From Azolla caroliniana (lineage: Eukaryota > Plantae > Polypodiophyta), in the NCBI GenBank assembly GCA_043228905.1, contig JBHGNT010000014.1, positions 19,406,001-19,470,000 on the forward strand: 64,000 nt of DNA, in the 5' to 3' direction. The notes under the pieces are model-generated. The model had not been told where the DNA came from. It saw nothing but the letters and a program-made list of their open reading frames with translations, and did no database searches. Both the position numbers and the translations under genes were made by a program. Below are positions 15,662 to 25,093 of the stretch, in pieces (position 1 is the first letter of the stretch; every line of letters starts with the position of its first letter).

Positions 15662-17470
15662 ATGGCTGCTCTCCTCCCTTCTTCTTCTTCTTCTTCTTCT
15701 TCTTCTTCTTCTTCTGATCAATCCCTGTCTAATCTAGACCTCTCTCTTGGTGGCCTCTTCTCTTCTACCAAACCTTCCTCCTCCTCACTAACCTTAGACA
15801 TCCCTACTACTCTTCCTCCTAACCCTAACCCTAACCCTAACCCTAACCTTCTTCAGATTCCATGTATTCTTGATCAGAGCTCCAACAGTGTAGTAGTAGT
15901 GAGCAGCAAGCAAGCAGCCATGGAATCTGCTCCTCCTTCCTACACTACTGCTCTTCAATACCCTCCCATACCCCATCCTCCGAGTCTTCTTCCTCAACAA
16001 CCTTACCATCATCATCAATGGATTCATCCTTTCAATCATCAGGCTGTGAGCAGCATACCTAATTATAAAACTGGCCCTCCTCCTCCTCCTCCTCTTCTTC
16101 CTGTCCCCAGGCTCTCCATACCTTGTCTCTCTCATCTTCATCATCACCATCATCACCATAGTAGCATAGAGTCTACCCCAAGTAGCATAAGTTTCTCACC
16201 CTTCCCTCCCTTCCTCAATCCGGTGATTCCTAGGGTCATGAGCTCGAATCCGGATTTCTCTAGTTTAGACAAGAAGGAAACATCATTAGTTAGAAGAGAA
16301 GATGAATCCTCTAGCACGTTATTTAATGCAGGCATAATAGAGCCAAAGGAGAGAGGAGGTGTAGCAGCAATCAGGGAAGATTGTAATAGCATTACAAAGG
16401 TAGAAGAGCCAGAGAAGATGAGGAAGAATAAGAAGAAGAATAAGAAGAGGAGGAGGAGGGGGGTAGTGTTAACAAAGAAGGCTTGTCAAGGAGAGATCAT
16501 TAAGAAAGTGAGGTTTAATGAAGATATAATCGTGGAGCAAAAGCAATTGAGAGAATCACATGGTAAGCTTGACCCACATGTTCAGTGTATGATGCCTATT
16601 GACCTATCATGCCAGCCAATGGGCACACATAAAAGGATGCATAGTAGCAATGTCTCTAGCCCTAATGCTCGTAAAGCCGTCGTCGGGTCCACCGATACAG
16701 ATACAAAGGTGGCCATTTCCTTTGTTAAACCCAAGTCAAGCCCTCAAAGCAAGGTTATGGTAGATGGCATTAAGGCCAAGCTTGATAATGCAAATAGTGA
16801 CACTAGAGTTCTACCCAAGTCAAGCCCTCAAAGCAAGGTTATGGTAGATGGCATTAAGGCCAAGCTTGATAATGCAAGTAGTGACACTAGAGTTCTAAGA
16901 GGACTTTATGGTGGTAACATTGATGATGAGGAGAAGGGGGAGAAGGGTGATGATAATGAGAAACTTGCACGCCAAGAAGAGATCGGAAGACCCGACAAAC
17001 GCGATGCAACTTCTTGCGACAACAAACACGAAGAAGGAGAGCCCCTAGGAACTGTGGACGACGAGAGTGCCAAGGAAACACCCGAGCCTCGTCTGAGACA
17101 AGTTGTCGGGGACTACGAGAGCGAGAATCGAAGTCAAGTTGTCGGGGACAATGATGAGAGCGAGAAGAAGAGAGCCCTGAGATCGTATCGATGGCGAGCG
17201 ATCGGGGCCAACATGAGTGAGAAGGAAATGATGGAATTATATCGATCCATCCTACATTTGCCACGGGTTTCAACCACGGGGATCGGGCCCAACGGGAAGA
17301 CCATATATGGTGTAATGTATATGAATGAGGCCAACAAGGCATGTTTGGTTTGTAGGTGCCATGGGGAGCACATGTCCCCACTAGAGTTTGTAGAGCACTC
17401 TGGGAGTAGTGACACCTCCAATCCTGAAAGGCACATAATGATCCACTATCTCCCTTCTTCTTTTCAATAA
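15662..17470 (+). CDS. NINJA/AFP-family transcriptional adaptor (EAR motif plus TIFY-domain-binding C domain)
   Basis: N-terminal LSNLDLSLGGLF resembles the NINJA A-domain EAR motif. C-terminal LPRVSTTGIGPNGKTIYGVMY...LVCRCHGEHMSPLEFVEHSG...NPERHI matches the NINJA/AFP C domain. Confidence 0.85.
   Translation: MAALLPSSSSSSSSSSSSDQSLSNLDLSLGGLFSSTKPSSSSLTLDIPTTLPPNPNPNPNPNLLQIPCILDQSSNSVVVVSSKQAAMESAPPSYTTALQYPPIPHPPSLLPQQPYHHHQWIHPFNHQAVSSIPNYKTGPPPPPPLLPVPRLSIPCLSHLHHHHHHHSSIESTPSSISFSPFPPFLNPVIPRVMSSNPDFSSLDKKETSLVRREDESSSTLFNAGIIEPKERGGVAAIREDCNSITKVEEPEKMRKNKKKNKKRRRRGVVLTKKACQGEIIKKVRFNEDIIVEQKQLRESHGKLDPHVQCMMPIDLSCQPMGTHKRMHSSNVSSPNARKAVVGSTDTDTKVAISFVKPKSSPQSKVMVDGIKAKLDNANSDTRVLPKSSPQSKVMVDGIKAKLDNASSDTRVLRGLYGGNIDDEEKGEKGDDNEKLARQEEIGRPDKRDATSCDNKHEEGEPLGTVDDESAKETPEPRLRQVVGDYESENRSQVVGDNDESEKKRALRSYRWRAIGANMSEKEMMELYRSILHLPRVSTTGIGPNGKTIYGVMYMNEANKACLVCRCHGEHMSPLEFVEHSGSSDTSNPERHIMIHYLPSSFQ
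16730..16897 (+). repeat. In-frame 84-bp (28-aa) tandem duplication within the NINJA/AFP-like CDS
   Basis: PKSSPQSKVMVDGIKAKLDNA(N/S)SDTRVL occurs twice, with one nucleotide difference. Confidence 0.95.
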
Positions 17471-19393: not shown

Positions 19394-22300
19394 TCACACA
19401 ACTGCACCTTCATCTATGGATTCCATCTCCTTGGATTCTGTGAAGGGCAGGAAATCATCATTGTCAGTGAGGTTGTATTTCTGGCCTATGGCCCTCAGCA
19501 TCTGGTGTACCTCATACATCGAGGGCCTTTCCTTTGGAATTGAATGAATACATCTACATGCAATCCTTAGGATTTGGTTGAGCTCACTATCAAATCCCTT
19601 CGTCTTGAGTGTCTTGTCCATAGCCTCATCACGACGTCCATTATTTGAAAGGAAAGTTACCCACTCCGCCAAATTCCCTCTAAAGTCACTTTCACTACAC
19701 ACATCGCTCGCCTTTTGACCTGTCACAAGCTCGAGTAGCACTACACCAAAGCTATAGACATCCCCTTTCACTGTAGGAACTAGTGTTCGGGCATACTCTG
19801 GAGCCACATAGCCAATATCACCAAAATCACCATTGACGAAGGTATTAATGTGGGTATCCACGGGTTTCATGAGACGAGCTAGCCCAAAATCCGTGATCCT
19901 TGGCTCGTAATCATCGTCTAGAAGAATGATACTACTACTAATGTTGCAATGGATGATTCTTGGATTACATGTGTGATGCAACCATGCAAGGCCACGAGCC
20001 ATTCCGATGCTTATCTTGACCCGTGTTGGCCAATCAGGATTTCTCCCCTCTGGCAGCACTTCATGAAGCCAATCTTTGAGGCTTCCATTCACCATATGCT
20101 TATAGATAAGTAGCTTTTCAGAACCTGCTACACAATATCCAAGCAACGGAACAAGATTCCTATGCCTTACTCTACCCAATATCTCCATCTCGGATTTGAA
20201 TTGCTTATCACTATGCAAAGAAGATGGGTTCAATCTCTTGACTGCCAACATAGACCCATCAGCAAGAAATGCTTTATAAACTGTCCCTGTTCTTCCCGAC
20301 CAGATTATGTTCTCTTTACTAAAATCATTCGTCACAAACATGAGCTCTGAGAGTTTTAGCTTCATCAATGGCTTCTCAAATAAGGAAACAACTACAGATT
20401 TAGGCATGCGTTTCGCCCATTTATGTTCATCTCGAAGAAAAGCACTTTCTTTTGTTCGGGCTCGGCCTGAATAATAATACCACACAAGTAGTGTGCACAC
20501 GAGGGCTAAAACTGCAGCCCCAGCCAAAGCACCACCAATGATGGGCCCCATCTTTGGGCCAGGATTGCATGATTTGTTATCCAATGGAGCACCACAAAGA
20601 CCAGGGTTATTGCTAAAGGATGCTGCAGGAAATGGGTCCCGATGAATCGCTGTTCGATTGATATAACTAGATGGGATGGATCCAGTTAGAGAGTTACCTG
20701 AAAAGTTCAATTCAACTTGGTTAGCTTAGACTTGCAACTATCCTTTAATATCACCATTTGAAAGAAAGCCAGTCTGACTTTGAGAGAACTTTTTTTTAAT
20801 TTGCATTATTTGAAAAAAATTAAGATAAGAGATACTCTCCATATTATGAGTTGTTCAAGAGTAAGCAAAGCCTTTGAACCGTTAACATTATCTCAACATG
20901 CATTATTTGAATATCACCTTCAATTTATGAAGTTGAAGGCAACAGAGACCCTCTAAAATACAAAATGTTTTAGAATAAAGAATTATTGAGATATTGGGTA
21001 ACAGATAATTTGCTTATATACATGTCCTCATATACATTCCTAATACACATGTTGTACATGCAAGTATGAAATACAACATATATTCATGTACACTATTCGC
21101 AACATGCCTGTGGTCAATGATTGGGCTAGAGATACACAACGGAAGCACAACATACACATGTGAAACAGAAATTGCATTTTCTATTCATGCAACTAGATGC
21201 AAATGAATCCCGTCAAAAGAGACATTTGCAAGGTCAAGTTTGATAGCTTAAATTTGCAAATACGAAACTTTAAACTCTAAACCTATCATTGATGTAACTA
21301 GATTGTGAAAAATTCACTTGTAGAAGAGTTACTTGAAAGATCAAGTACAAACCTAAACCTAAACCCAAACCACAAAATATAAAACCTTAAGCTCTAAATC
21401 CTAACATTTTATAGATGTAAGTAGCCACATTGGGATAAATCCAGTCAAGTTAACAAACAAAAGGTTTATTTCAGATATCAAGCCCGGTTAGCCTTGGAGA
21501 AATCCCTGTTTGGCACAGGAGCTCTCTGGAGAATTGATCTTCTAAACTCTAATCCTTAATCCTAAAACCTAAAATAGAAAGCTCAAAACTTTAAGCCTAA
21601 AACTTTTATTGATGTGACTGTATAACGTCAAGTAGAAACTGTATACCTTCTATTGAGAAAACTAGAATCTAAACCTTGGATTGATGACAGTTATAACTAC
21701 GTTACAGAAGACTTGTGTGAAAGAACAAGTACAATCCTTAACCCAGAACACAAAATACAAAACTTTAAACCCTAAACCCTAACATGGTACCTTCAATTGA
21801 TGTAAGTAGACGGGGATAACTTCACTTCAGTTAACATATAAAGTACTAGCCTGAAAGATGAAGTACATTTAAACTGAGAACAATAGCGGTTGTATATGGA
21901 GGCCAAAACTCTAAACGATTTAAACCATCAGTTGATATAACTACATTGAGATTAATCCAGTTAGGTTAAGAACGAAAAGAGTTAGCACCCGAGAGATCAA
22001 GCTAAACCAGAACGAAAAGATTATACAAAGGTAAGAATTAGTTACCCGAAAGATCAAGAACAGTTAACCTCGGAAGGATCCCAATTTGCCATGGAAGCTG
22101 ACCAGATAATTGGTTCTCTTGCAATTTCAGACTATTGAGATAAACACAGTCCTGGAAACCTTCTGGAACATTCCCTGAGAATTCATTCTGAGAAAGATCT
22201 ATAGCTGTGCTATAAGGAAGATCCTTGCATATATCTGAAGGAATATTTCCATTGAACTTATTTTGAGATAGATCAAGTTCTTGTAAAGATGAACAAAGGT

Positions 22301-22562
22301 CTAGTCCTTCTGGGAAACTTCCAGAAAGACTTGAGTGTGTGAGCTTTAAGCTAAATACTTTATTTTCTAGAGCATTCCAGCAGTTAACGCCAGAAAAGCT
22401 GCAGACGGAGCCTTTAGAGGCATTATTGAAGTTCCAGTTGGACAGAAGCCCTAATGGATCTTCGACCGAGTTATGGAAAGCTTGTAAACACGCTGTGTCG
22501 TCCTCTGAGTGAACCAAGGGAGAAGAAAGAAGGGGAAGAAGAAGCAGAAAAATAAGCTTCAT
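19394..22562 (-). CDS. BIR-like LRR-X receptor-like (pseudo)kinase, 2 exons (22562-22046, 20697-19394), ~606 aa
   Basis: Signal peptide, LRRNT cysteines, about 5 LRRs, a TM helix and a kinase domain with VSLFEKPLMKLKL, SGRTG, LAVKRL, IIHCNISS, DFGLARLM and TFVNGDFGDIGYVAPEY, all typical of the BIR family. Splicing TCG G|GTAAC...TTTTCAG|GTAAC joins the two ORFs in frame as LDLSGNSLTGSIP. Confidence 0.9.
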
Positions 22563-22698
22563 TTCTTGTTTTATACTTTGTACTGCAAGGCTATATAGCT
22601 ATAATGAGAGCTGAAGAATGAGATCTGAGATATGGAGACCTCTGACACAGAAAGGAGGGGAGAGAGAGGAGGAAGTTGAGCATTCAGAGCTCACTTAG

Positions 22699-22729
<31 letters not shown>

Positions 22730-22814
22730 CATGGTCCTCTTAACTCCCCCAGAAAAAATGCAGGTCAAACGTTTAACTGTATCTCTCATGTTTCATGGGC
22801 GAAACCCTAAATTG

Positions 22815-22845
<31 letters not shown>

Positions 22846-22895
22846 TCCCTCTCTTTGGTCTGTCCATGAAATGGCCACTCACTCAGTCACACCAG

Positions 22896-23012
22896 TATGT
22901 ATGTATGTTATGTTACTTATGTATGTATGTATGTATGTATGTATGTATGTATGTATGTATGTATGTATGTATGTATGTATGTATGTATGTATTGTTATGT
23001 TACTTATGTATG

Positions 23013-23045
<33 letters not shown>

Positions 23046-23067
23046 TATGTTATGTTACTTATGTATG

Positions 23068-23101
<34 letters not shown>

Positions 23102-23113
23102 TGTATGTATGTA

Positions 23114-23148
<35 letters not shown>

Positions 23149-23163
23149 ATGTATATGTATGTA

Positions 23164-23215
<52 letters not shown>

Positions 23216-23237
23216 TGTATGCGTGTATGTATGTATG
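22896..23237. repeat. Compound (TATG)n/(TG)n microsatellite upstream of the BIR-like gene
   Basis: About 340 bp of TATG and TG units, interrupted three times by ttatgttactta. Confidence 0.95.
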
Positions 23238-25093
23238 ATCAATATAGTTAGTCAGTGAAGGCCAATAGAAATGGGCGGTGCCCACACTCCTAACTATCAT
23301 TAGCATTAGCATTAGCACTAGCATTGCATTTCGGGGGTAACATGTAGGTCACTTAAATGGCCAGATGGACACACTCCATGTTGATCGTTGAAACAACCTC
23401 ACACCCGTGTGATCATATGTTGGTAACCCATCGGGTCACACTAATTTGCCAAACAACCTCGACACTACTGCCACATTGGTAGGTTATATATATCGACCAC
23501 ACGATCCTCACATTGCCTCCACTCCTCCATTTAACACATGGTCTGGATGGCTGTCTCAAGTGCTTCAATGGCTTCTTATCAATACATTTATTGCCTCAAA
23601 TTGTTTCGAGACCCGAGGATTCCCATTTCTTTGGACTCAGAAGGTAGCAAGAGACATGAACATGTAACCCGTTTCTCTTGAGTGACGAAAAAGAGATCCA
23701 ACGAATTTGTGAAGCCCATAATAAAATCATTCGGTCATATTGTTTGTCAAACAGTTGTTATGTCCAACTACCTTTCATGTGTTAAATATTGATGGAAATG
23801 GCCAATCTCTTATGATTCAACGAAGCTAATGTTTGAAAATGAATTTCCGAATATTGATTTGAGTATTGTGTGAGATTCCTAGAGCTTTTGAGAACGACAT
23901 CCTACAGGGTTATCACAAATACAAATTAGATGCATTGATGTGTACTTTGTCGATGCATCTAATTTAGAGTAATGAACAACTTGAATTTCAATCATATGTT
24001 AATGCATCGACATTCGGAAAATTGGTGGTTCACCTAGGTCACCCATAGAACAATGTGGGAATAACCTTATCTTATCTTTTCTCAAAATACTCTTGGTGGT
24101 AAAGAGAACAAAAACTCAACATGCATTATCTCATGTATCGTAACTTTCCTCAACAACACTATCATTTGCGCACAATGAATGTTTGAAGAGTTGCATGGAA
24201 GTATATTAAAACTTTTGTAAAAGTTGGCAAAAATCCCCATCATTTTCTCGAATGTCAACGAATGGACAAGCTATTCCCTTCTTTCAAGATTCTCACAACT
24301 GTGTATTCCAATGGTTTCATGCAACAAGACTTGTGGGAGTTCTACATGACAAACTCATATATAAGAAATGGTACGTGTCAACGATTCATGAAATTGCAAA
24401 CTACTATCGTCACAAAGCCCTGACATTAGTACTACTTCACAAATAAAGCACACGATTACGAAATTAAATGAAGGATAAGGTGATTAGAGCACAGTCATCA
24501 AATAAATTTTAGTTCCAACTTCCAACAACATCAACAAACTTCAAATCTAGATTCTACAAATTGTTATGGGGCAACCATCCCAATCAAAAAGAAATGGGGA
24601 AATTCTAAGATAAGTGAAAGTTTTCCTTATCTCCCCAAATGTTCTCAAGTTTGTTTTTTTCATTCATTCAAAAAGTGTCATCAGTCAACTCTCAAAAAAG
24701 AGAAAAGGGGATGAAGTGACTATGTAATTGCTCAAAAGCATAGATGATTGAGAAAAAAGGGATGAATGCCCATATAATTGGCCAAATAGCACATACAATT
24801 GCTCTTTCGGGTTGGCGGATGACATCAACAAAATAGAGAGTAATTTACAAGTATTTTAGTCTATTCCTAAAAAAGGATTTCATGTGTCTATGGAACAACA
24901 CTTGTTACATCGACAAATGATATCAAACACAATGAAAAGACGTGTATAAATCTATGCATATAAGATTTGTGTGTGTACATAAGCACACTATTCAACACAT
25001 CCTAATCAAAGAGATATTCCTTTTTCATGCATCATCATGATATTGGAAATATGAACATAAAAAGACTAATACAAGTGTTACTTTTGCACAAGA

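Follow-up and report, generated by a model that had tools for sequence, protein, structure and literature searches.

The 64,000-nucleotide (nt) stretch of Azolla caroliniana DNA analysed here, referred to as the window (GenBank assembly GCA_043228905.1, contig JBHGNT010000014.1, positions 19,406,001 to 19,470,000), contains a gene for a leucine-rich repeat (LRR) receptor kinase whose coding sequence is interrupted by a 1348-nt intron. It is likely that this intron was gained by tandem duplication at an AGGT site in the coding sequence, as set out in the Rogers model. The defining points of this model (PMC3443670, PMC4974935) can be recognized in sequence comparisons: outgroup genes lack the intron, its predicted splice sites lie in copies of one AGGT-bearing coding segment, part of the intron is exon-derived and the predicted protein is unaltered. 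The copies within the intron alternate with decayed telomere-type repeats, and filler of this kind was probably present in the founding unit.

The gene lies on the minus strand (table 1), and its model was assembled with exon 1 and exon 2 searched and aligned as separate rows. Exon 1 has Pfam matches to LRRNT_2, LRR_8 and LRR_1 and ends with ...VLDLS and the first base of a Gly codon, while the translation of exon 2 begins NSLTG... in a frame of 433 codons. The nearest named homologues are fern proteins of Adiantum and Ceratopteris, at 60-65% identity, and further homologues carry the names At5g48380-like (BIR1) and At1g27190-like (BIR3). From its Pfam domains, the names of its homologues and full-length alignment, the gene is classified as a fern BIR-type LRR receptor kinase of LRR receptor-like kinase subfamily Xa. 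When the two exons are aligned with 11 full-length homologues they abut, with a single column between them that corresponds to the split Gly codon G/GT (splice positions are marked here by a slash). Zero residues are gained or lost at the join, as befits a precise gain. The donor context is ...TCGG/GTAAC and the acceptor context ...TCAG/GTAAC, so that both splice sites sit in two copies of a single AGGT-bearing exonic sequence. A T-rich pyrimidine run precedes the acceptor AG, and the branch-point-like CTAAC upstream of it appears by eye to correspond to the TTAAC formed by the Arg-Leu-Thr codons of exon 1. The GC content of the intron is 33%, against 41-44% in the exons, and the exon 2 frame opens just ten codons before the acceptor AG, where it meets a stop. 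A first-pass annotation of the window had described the donor and acceptor contexts as two copies of one coding sequence, the intron as restoring a receptor of normal length and the unspliced frame as stopping immediately after the donor. All three descriptions hold: the contexts are as stated, the exons join across one split Gly column and the 174-residue open reading frame (ORF) exists.

The presence of an intron in other lineages was assessed by comparing the range of each gene with three times the number of residues plus one, where equality denotes an intronless coding sequence. The coding sequence is intronless in five annotated genomes, those of Adiantum capillus-veneris, A. nelumboides, Ceratopteris richardii, Selaginella and Marchantia. 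The Nelumbo gene has one intron of ~100 nt in the juxtamembrane region at residues 282/283, ~100 residues downstream of the window site (residue ~173), and tomato SlBIR3, AtBIR3 and their closest orthologues consist of a single exon (PMC5618615). The first-pass annotation had proposed looking in distant BIR genes for an intron at this codon; none of those compared has one, and the BIR family is shown to have been ancestrally without an intron in its LRR region. AGGT is also absent at the homologous codons of Selaginella (TCC-AAC-AAC), Marchantia (TCT-CAC-AAC) and two fern contigs (TCT-TCC-AAT and TCA-TCC-AAC); the splice site comes from Ser-Gly-Asn codons, TC(A/G)-GGT-AAC, which are specific to the window lineage. 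The contigs L004 and L005 were considered as intronless genomes; being 2-3 kb long with uninterrupted ORFs, they were taken for transcripts and left out of the count. That the intron is instead an ancestral one, kept only in the fern lineage of the window and lost everywhere else, is scarcely credible. No specific support was found for such a history beyond the common loss of introns in plants, whereas it requires independent losses in the liverwort, the lycophyte, polypod ferns and seed plants (for BIR3, PMC5618615). It also conflicts with the outgroup codons, which lack AGGT, and leaves the coding copies inside the intron unaccounted for.

These copies were identified by local alignment of the intron against the contiguous 60-nt acceptor copy as reference, with the best score in each of 300 dinucleotide shuffles as the null (mean 24.4, 95th percentile 29.5, 99th percentile 32.5). 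The intron contains six near-full-length copies of a ~57-nt coding stretch that spans the splice junction; all six score above the 95th percentile and five above the 99th. Since LRR units resemble one another, each copy was also scored against the equivalent 57 nt of LRR1-4. The junction-spanning stretch of LRR5 is the best match in every case, with a wide margin in five. Copy U5 is continuous with a further 57 nt that align without gaps to upstream exon 1 (score 38 against a null of 18.4 +/- 3.3), and together they form ~130 nt of coding sequence uninterrupted across the junction. A similar stretch, judged by eye and unscored, lies at the matching place in the related contig L009. Every copy joins the tail of exon 1 to the head of exon 2 unbroken, which argues that the copies descend from an uninterrupted template. 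They recur in the intron with a period of ~134-138 nt and show ~70-83% identity to the exon. In most of the internal copies the GT or the AG is gone; internal GT sites lie in U1 and U6 and an internal AG site in U2. The four decayed copies that had been noted at first as a minimum are all real, with two more beside them, and the intron-exon similarity that was to be checked is significant against shuffles and specific to the last LRR. The accompanying proposal of serial duplication of the last LRR segment is supported, with corrections: the copies are indeed specific to LRR5, but the repeated unit is a coding copy with telomere-type filler, and ~450 nt near the acceptor are unrelated to it.

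The spacers between the copies were each scored against a telomere-repeat array and compared with their own shuffles. Five spacers are decayed TTTAGGG telomere-type repeats (p <= 0.004 each), with reverse-complement scores at background and autocorrelation peaks at lags 7 and 14 (0.49 at lag 7). Their orientation is uniform, the G-strand running 5' to 3' along the sense strand of the gene, and they are homologous to one another (repeat families D1 and D5). The possibility that the spacers are decayed coding sequence was rejected, since they give no signal against the downstream flank (RTAIHRD...GLCGAPL) or the upstream flank, the U5 extension aside. The remaining block of ~450 nt next to the acceptor copy is ~81% identical to its counterpart in L009. 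This unique block contains a near-palindrome at 21053-21092. The intron has no match outside the locus within the 64-kb window, no Rfam family occurs within it and the unique block has no mobile-element features. Insertion of a transposon or introner-like element was discarded as a source, since the 64-kb window contains no dispersed copies and the ends of the intron carry no terminal inverted repeats.

A sequence of events can be proposed that would begin, on the stem of a single fern lineage, with the tandem duplication of coding sequence across the beginning of the last LRR. The duplicated segment would extend approximately from ...RLTVLDLSG to NSLTGSIPSSYIN, with a length of at least 57 nt and up to ~130 nt, and would contain CAG/GTAAC with a pyrimidine-rich run and TTAAC ahead of the site. 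The present codons for Arg-Leu-Thr-Val-Leu-Asp-Leu-Ser provide this order: TTAAC, a pyrimidine-rich run and then CAG/GTAAC. The GT of the upstream copy would become the donor and the AG of the downstream copy the acceptor, so that splicing takes out the added material precisely and leaves the protein as it was. The founding unit would have had a period of ~134 nt, made up of one coding copy and ~60-75 nt of TTTAGGG-type repeats, and one such period would have been the first intron. The repeats suggest that break repair filled the joint of the duplication with telomere-type DNA; a break immediately past ...ATCAAT-CGAA, extended from its sense-strand 3' end, would be consistent with the orientation of the tract. 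The unit would then have grown into an array by unequal exchange and by additional segmental duplications, one or more of which extended back into exon 1. This array would have been remodelled differently in related lineages, an unrelated stretch of ~450 nt coming to adjoin the acceptor, while the flanking copies would have been kept intact because they are exons. A more daring version, to which we give only tentative credence, places the founding in one step: a chromosome break in the LRR coding sequence, addition of TTTAGGG to the upstream end by telomerase, and rejoining to template at least 57 nt upstream, perhaps via AGGTT microhomology. Two copies and the telomere repeats between them would have been spliceable from birth, and minisatellite-like growth would have followed. 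If true, telomerase-type filler would be raw material for a new intron.

The age of the intron can be judged from its relatives. A metagenome scan with exon 1 yielded two related contigs, L008 and L009. The latter carries exon 1, an identically positioned intron of 1359 nt and the beginning of exon 2; the former carries exon 1 and 660 nt of intron, in which the donor CAG/GTAAC is identical to the acceptor motif and a coding copy lies 50 nt in (p = 0.02). The ORFs of P0121-P0124 end in ...LDLSGN and a stop, as in the window gene, and the stop after the donor is common to all four relatives; we infer that P0122 and P0124 contain the intron. In a tree of exon 1 proteins, L008, L009, P0122 and P0124 group with the window gene in a single clade that has 100/100 support and a long stem, and this clade stands apart from the intronless fern genes. 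P0124 had been considered as a sign that the intron is far older than its copies, a reading dropped because the tree places it within the intron-bearing clade. L006 comprises the kinase part only and is distant (synonymous divergence, dS, about 1.07).

The introns of the window and L009 are ~81% identical from inside U5 to the acceptor. The 5' parts of the two arrays (window 22018-21438, L009 708-1231) both consist of copies and telomere-like units and cannot be aligned in register. An intron that is shared and 5' arrays that are out of register indicate that the intron predates the split of the lineages and that the array has been remodelled since. Judged from these comparisons, the intron is not young: the window gene has it in common with L008 and L009 and probably with P0122 and P0124. 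A 13-nt insertion occurs in U1, U2 and U5 of the window gene but not in U6, U7 or the exon, and the similarity between the blocks U5-U6 and U1-U2, which are offset by ~510 nt, is 77-82%. The head of U1, a near-exact copy of the exon 1 end, is missing in the relatives. These three features point to several rounds of duplication, at least one of which reached into exon 1. The head of U6 (21345-21335) is a separate observation: in the window it is identical to the exon 1 tail at 11 of 11 positions, and the orthologous heads in L008 (~1360) and L009 (~1318) differ at 4-5 of the 11, with the rest of the copy well conserved. The exact head in the window may derive from conversion by the exon.

Several observations weigh against an origin by duplication. 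Duplication does not account for the whole intron, of which only ~400 of 1348 nt are recognizably exon-derived, the telomere-type spacers and the unrelated unique part of ~450 nt being of other origin. Taken by themselves, the terminal 60-90 nt at either end of the intron show no significant similarity to the exon flanks outside the junction motif of ~18 nt: comparison of the last 90 nt with the exon 1 tail and of the first 60 nt with the exon 2 head gives p = 0.19 and p = 0.79, taken in the order listed. Part of that shared motif is splice consensus, and the donor of the window gene is now CGG/GT, not CAG/GT. Some copies are demonstrably later events, and the visible copies need not be the founding ones. 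L004 and L005, the nearest relatives beyond the clade, resemble transcripts and are of no use for bracketing the gain. The junction 22046/20697 was itself derived from reading frames and homology, with no transcript of the gene found, and two sister copies from different assemblies, L007 and L009, carry frameshifts, a 1-nt deletion in exon 2 being common to both.

In one alternative, insertion came first. Unrelated DNA, either the unique part, the telomere-type tract or both, would have entered a coding break, a short target duplication would have supplied AG/GT, and the copies would stem from later, repeated duplication of the exon-intron and intron-exon boundaries. The two thirds of the intron that are not exon-derived, the confinement of terminal similarity to ~18 nt and the head of U1, as a recent exon-intron boundary copy missing in relatives, are all in keeping with this account, and once an intron existed the contiguous acceptor region could have templated copies that span the junction. 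However, the homologous spacers alternate regularly with the copies at ~134 nt, which fits a founding unit of copy and filler. The ~130 nt of U5 and its extension, apparently present in L009 too (by eye), far exceed a target duplication of the repair type, and the unique part lacks both mobile-element features and a second copy in the window. Insertion first is therefore considered unlikely, and tandem duplication of the AGGT-bearing segment remains the preferred origin.

Whether the intron is spliced was approached through the reading frame of exon 2. Neutral drift of exon 2 was modelled at given values of K, with substitutions only and K at or below the decay of the intron copies. The probability that the 433-codon frame stays open is 0.0125 at K = 0.1, 0.0027 at K = 0.15 and 0.0005 at K = 0.2, and U6 and U7 are older than a split since which each lineage has accumulated ~0.11 changes per site. 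The frame is open despite this low neutral probability, which argues that exon 2 is still translated and hence that the intron is spliced. Polarized substitutions on the window branch comprise 3 derived nonsynonymous changes in exon 2, an underpowered sample. It was also considered that the element is not a working intron, the locus being either a young pseudogene or two units, a 174-residue secreted LRR protein and a membrane kinase starting at Met48 of exon 2. The stop after the donor in all four relatives and the 385-residue product that an ORF caller placed inside exon 2 (P0001) are compatible with this reading, and no transcript of the gene was found. The lesions of the sister copies speak for decay: in addition to the shared deletion, L009 has lost 15 nt in exon 1 and 8 nt in exon 2, and 141 nt are missing from the kinase part of L007 (lesions at ~250 in L007 and at ~2255, 2075 and 655 in L009), so that this sister lineage or gene copy looks pseudogenized. 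The window copy, by contrast, is intact in both exons, and full-length homologues align with its two ORFs in exact colinearity. The LRR cap with its conserved Cys, encoded by codons 1-47 of exon 2, is intact though no start codon lies upstream of it, the open frame would be improbable under neutral drift since the copies formed, and donor, branch-like CTAAC, pyrimidine tract and AG are all in place. A non-functional intron is accordingly judged very improbable. The suggestion in the first-pass annotation that unspliced RNA yields a decoy isoform of 174 residues is pure speculation.

Table 1. Features of the BIR-type gene and its intron, in window coordinates.
Feature	Positions	Strand	Description
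Exon 1	22562-22046	minus	ATG at 22562; 172 codons + 1 nt; signal peptide, LRRNT, LRR1-4 and start of LRR5
Intron	22045-20698	minus	1348 nt, phase 1, GT..AG
Exon 2	20697-19394	minus	remainder of LRR5, C-terminal Cys-containing cap, transmembrane helix, kinase domain, stop codon
Donor copy of junction motif	22058-22041	minus	splice donor G/GT at 22046/22045
In-frame TAA	22040-22038	minus	two codons into the intron; unspliced message gives a 174-residue ORF
Copy U1	22001-21932	minus	score 46; head a near-exact copy of the exon 1 end
Spacer S1	21931-21864	minus	telomere-like, p = 0.004
Copy U2	21863-21792	minus	score 35
Spacer S2	21791-21730	minus	telomere-like, p < 0.002; 2.4 perfect TTTAGGG units at 21782-21766
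Copy U3	21729-21648	minus	score 30.5; weakest copy, with 4% of shuffles scoring higher
Spacer S4a	21610-21545	minus	telomere-like, p = 0.002
U5 extension	21544-21488	minus	copy of the exon 1 stretch preceding LRR5 (NQLSGQLPWQIGILPRLT region); contiguous with U5
Copy U5	21482-21411	minus	score 33; 3' part from 21437 common to L008 and L009
Spacer S5	21410-21346	minus	telomere-like, p < 0.002; 78% identical to S2 (repeat family D5)
Copy U6	21345-21288	minus	score 52.5; best preserved; orthologous to L009 1327-1378
Spacer S6	21287-21239	minus	telomere-like, p < 0.002
Copy U7	21238-21179	minus	score 38; orthologous to L009 1426-1470
Unique block	21178-20730	minus	~450 nt, AT-rich, adjoining the acceptor copy; neither coding copy nor telomere-like
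CTAAC, branch-point-like motif	20724-20720	minus	at -24 relative to the acceptor AG; identified by reading the sequence
Acceptor copy	20712-20653	minus	last 15 intron nt (...TTTTCAG) continuous with exon 2 GTAAC...; contiguous genomic copy of the whole junction segment

Other features of the gene and its surroundings were recorded. No full-length protein or transcript from the same species occurs in the protein collection searched, and L003, the sole same-species contig in the collections, is genomic DNA. In exon 2 (19950-19960, minus strand) the catalytic-loop motif of the kinase reads HCN (RIIHCNISS), compared with HRN in all aligned homologues, a change specific to the lineage in a kinase that, being BIR-like, is atypical to begin with. 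Simple repeats crowd the region 5' of the gene (22697-23260), including (TCT)n at 22697-22728, (GA)n at 22815-22854 and a long compound (AC)n/(ACAT)n tract at ~22895-23260. The neighbouring Ninja/AFP-like gene (Pfam TDBD; ORF 15662-17470, plus strand) has an in-frame tandem duplication of 84 nt at 16729-16897, which comprises 2.0 copies at 98% identity and repeats 28 residues; it is a young coding duplication beside the BIR gene.

The gain of introns by tandem duplication at AGGT sites has already been shown in vivo (PMC3265369). A review tabulates 188 events (PMC3443670), so that natural examples are less scarce than the first-pass annotation had stated, although the source sequence is unidentifiable for most gained introns and cases with a readable source are described as few (PMC4974935). 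The mechanism is therefore known, and the known picture of how introns arise is left unchanged; what is new is a well-bracketed fern case whose repeat unit is of unusual, composite make-up. Still legible at the locus are an outgroup-supported gain, a duplicated AGGT segment, pre-existing branch-like and pyrimidine signals, and later growth by duplication. It adds an example from a non-seed plant, in a regulator of immune co-receptors (BIR-type, by homology), and its telomere-type filler offers a testable link between break repair and the birth of introns.

The fern gene shares with the in vivo system of PMC3265369 the duplication of an exonic AGGT segment whose upstream GT and downstream AG come to serve as splice sites, with the protein left as it was. 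ATP2A1 (PMC3265369, summarized in PMC4974935) is a further parallel, since the duplicated coding segment itself bears a branch-like motif and a pyrimidine run. The fern intron differs from that system in being a multi-copy array with telomere-type filler and a 450-nt unrelated part, and in being known from its sequence. Yeast genes provide a likeness to the array, with several tandem copies of a short AGGT-bearing coding segment and an intron that spans several of them; however, the yeast unit is 24 bp of pure coding sequence, young and supported by expressed sequence tags, whereas the fern unit is ~134 nt (57 nt coding plus filler), decayed and remodelled between lineages. The potato RdRp intron (Ma et al. 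2016, PMC4974935) is another plant case in which tandem duplication created a new intron, and duplication of an exon-intron boundary seems to have occurred in the fern gene as a secondary event (U1 and the exon 1 extension of U5). In potato the duplicated stretch included an intron-exon boundary that already existed and whose signals were used again, while relatives of the fern gene have no coding-sequence intron that could have been reused. Intron gain by break repair leaves non-homologous filler between direct repeats of the target, and the telomere-type repeats could be such filler; the repeats left by repair are a few bases long, whereas those flanking the filler in the fern intron measure at least 18 nt and up to ~130 nt and have been multiplied.

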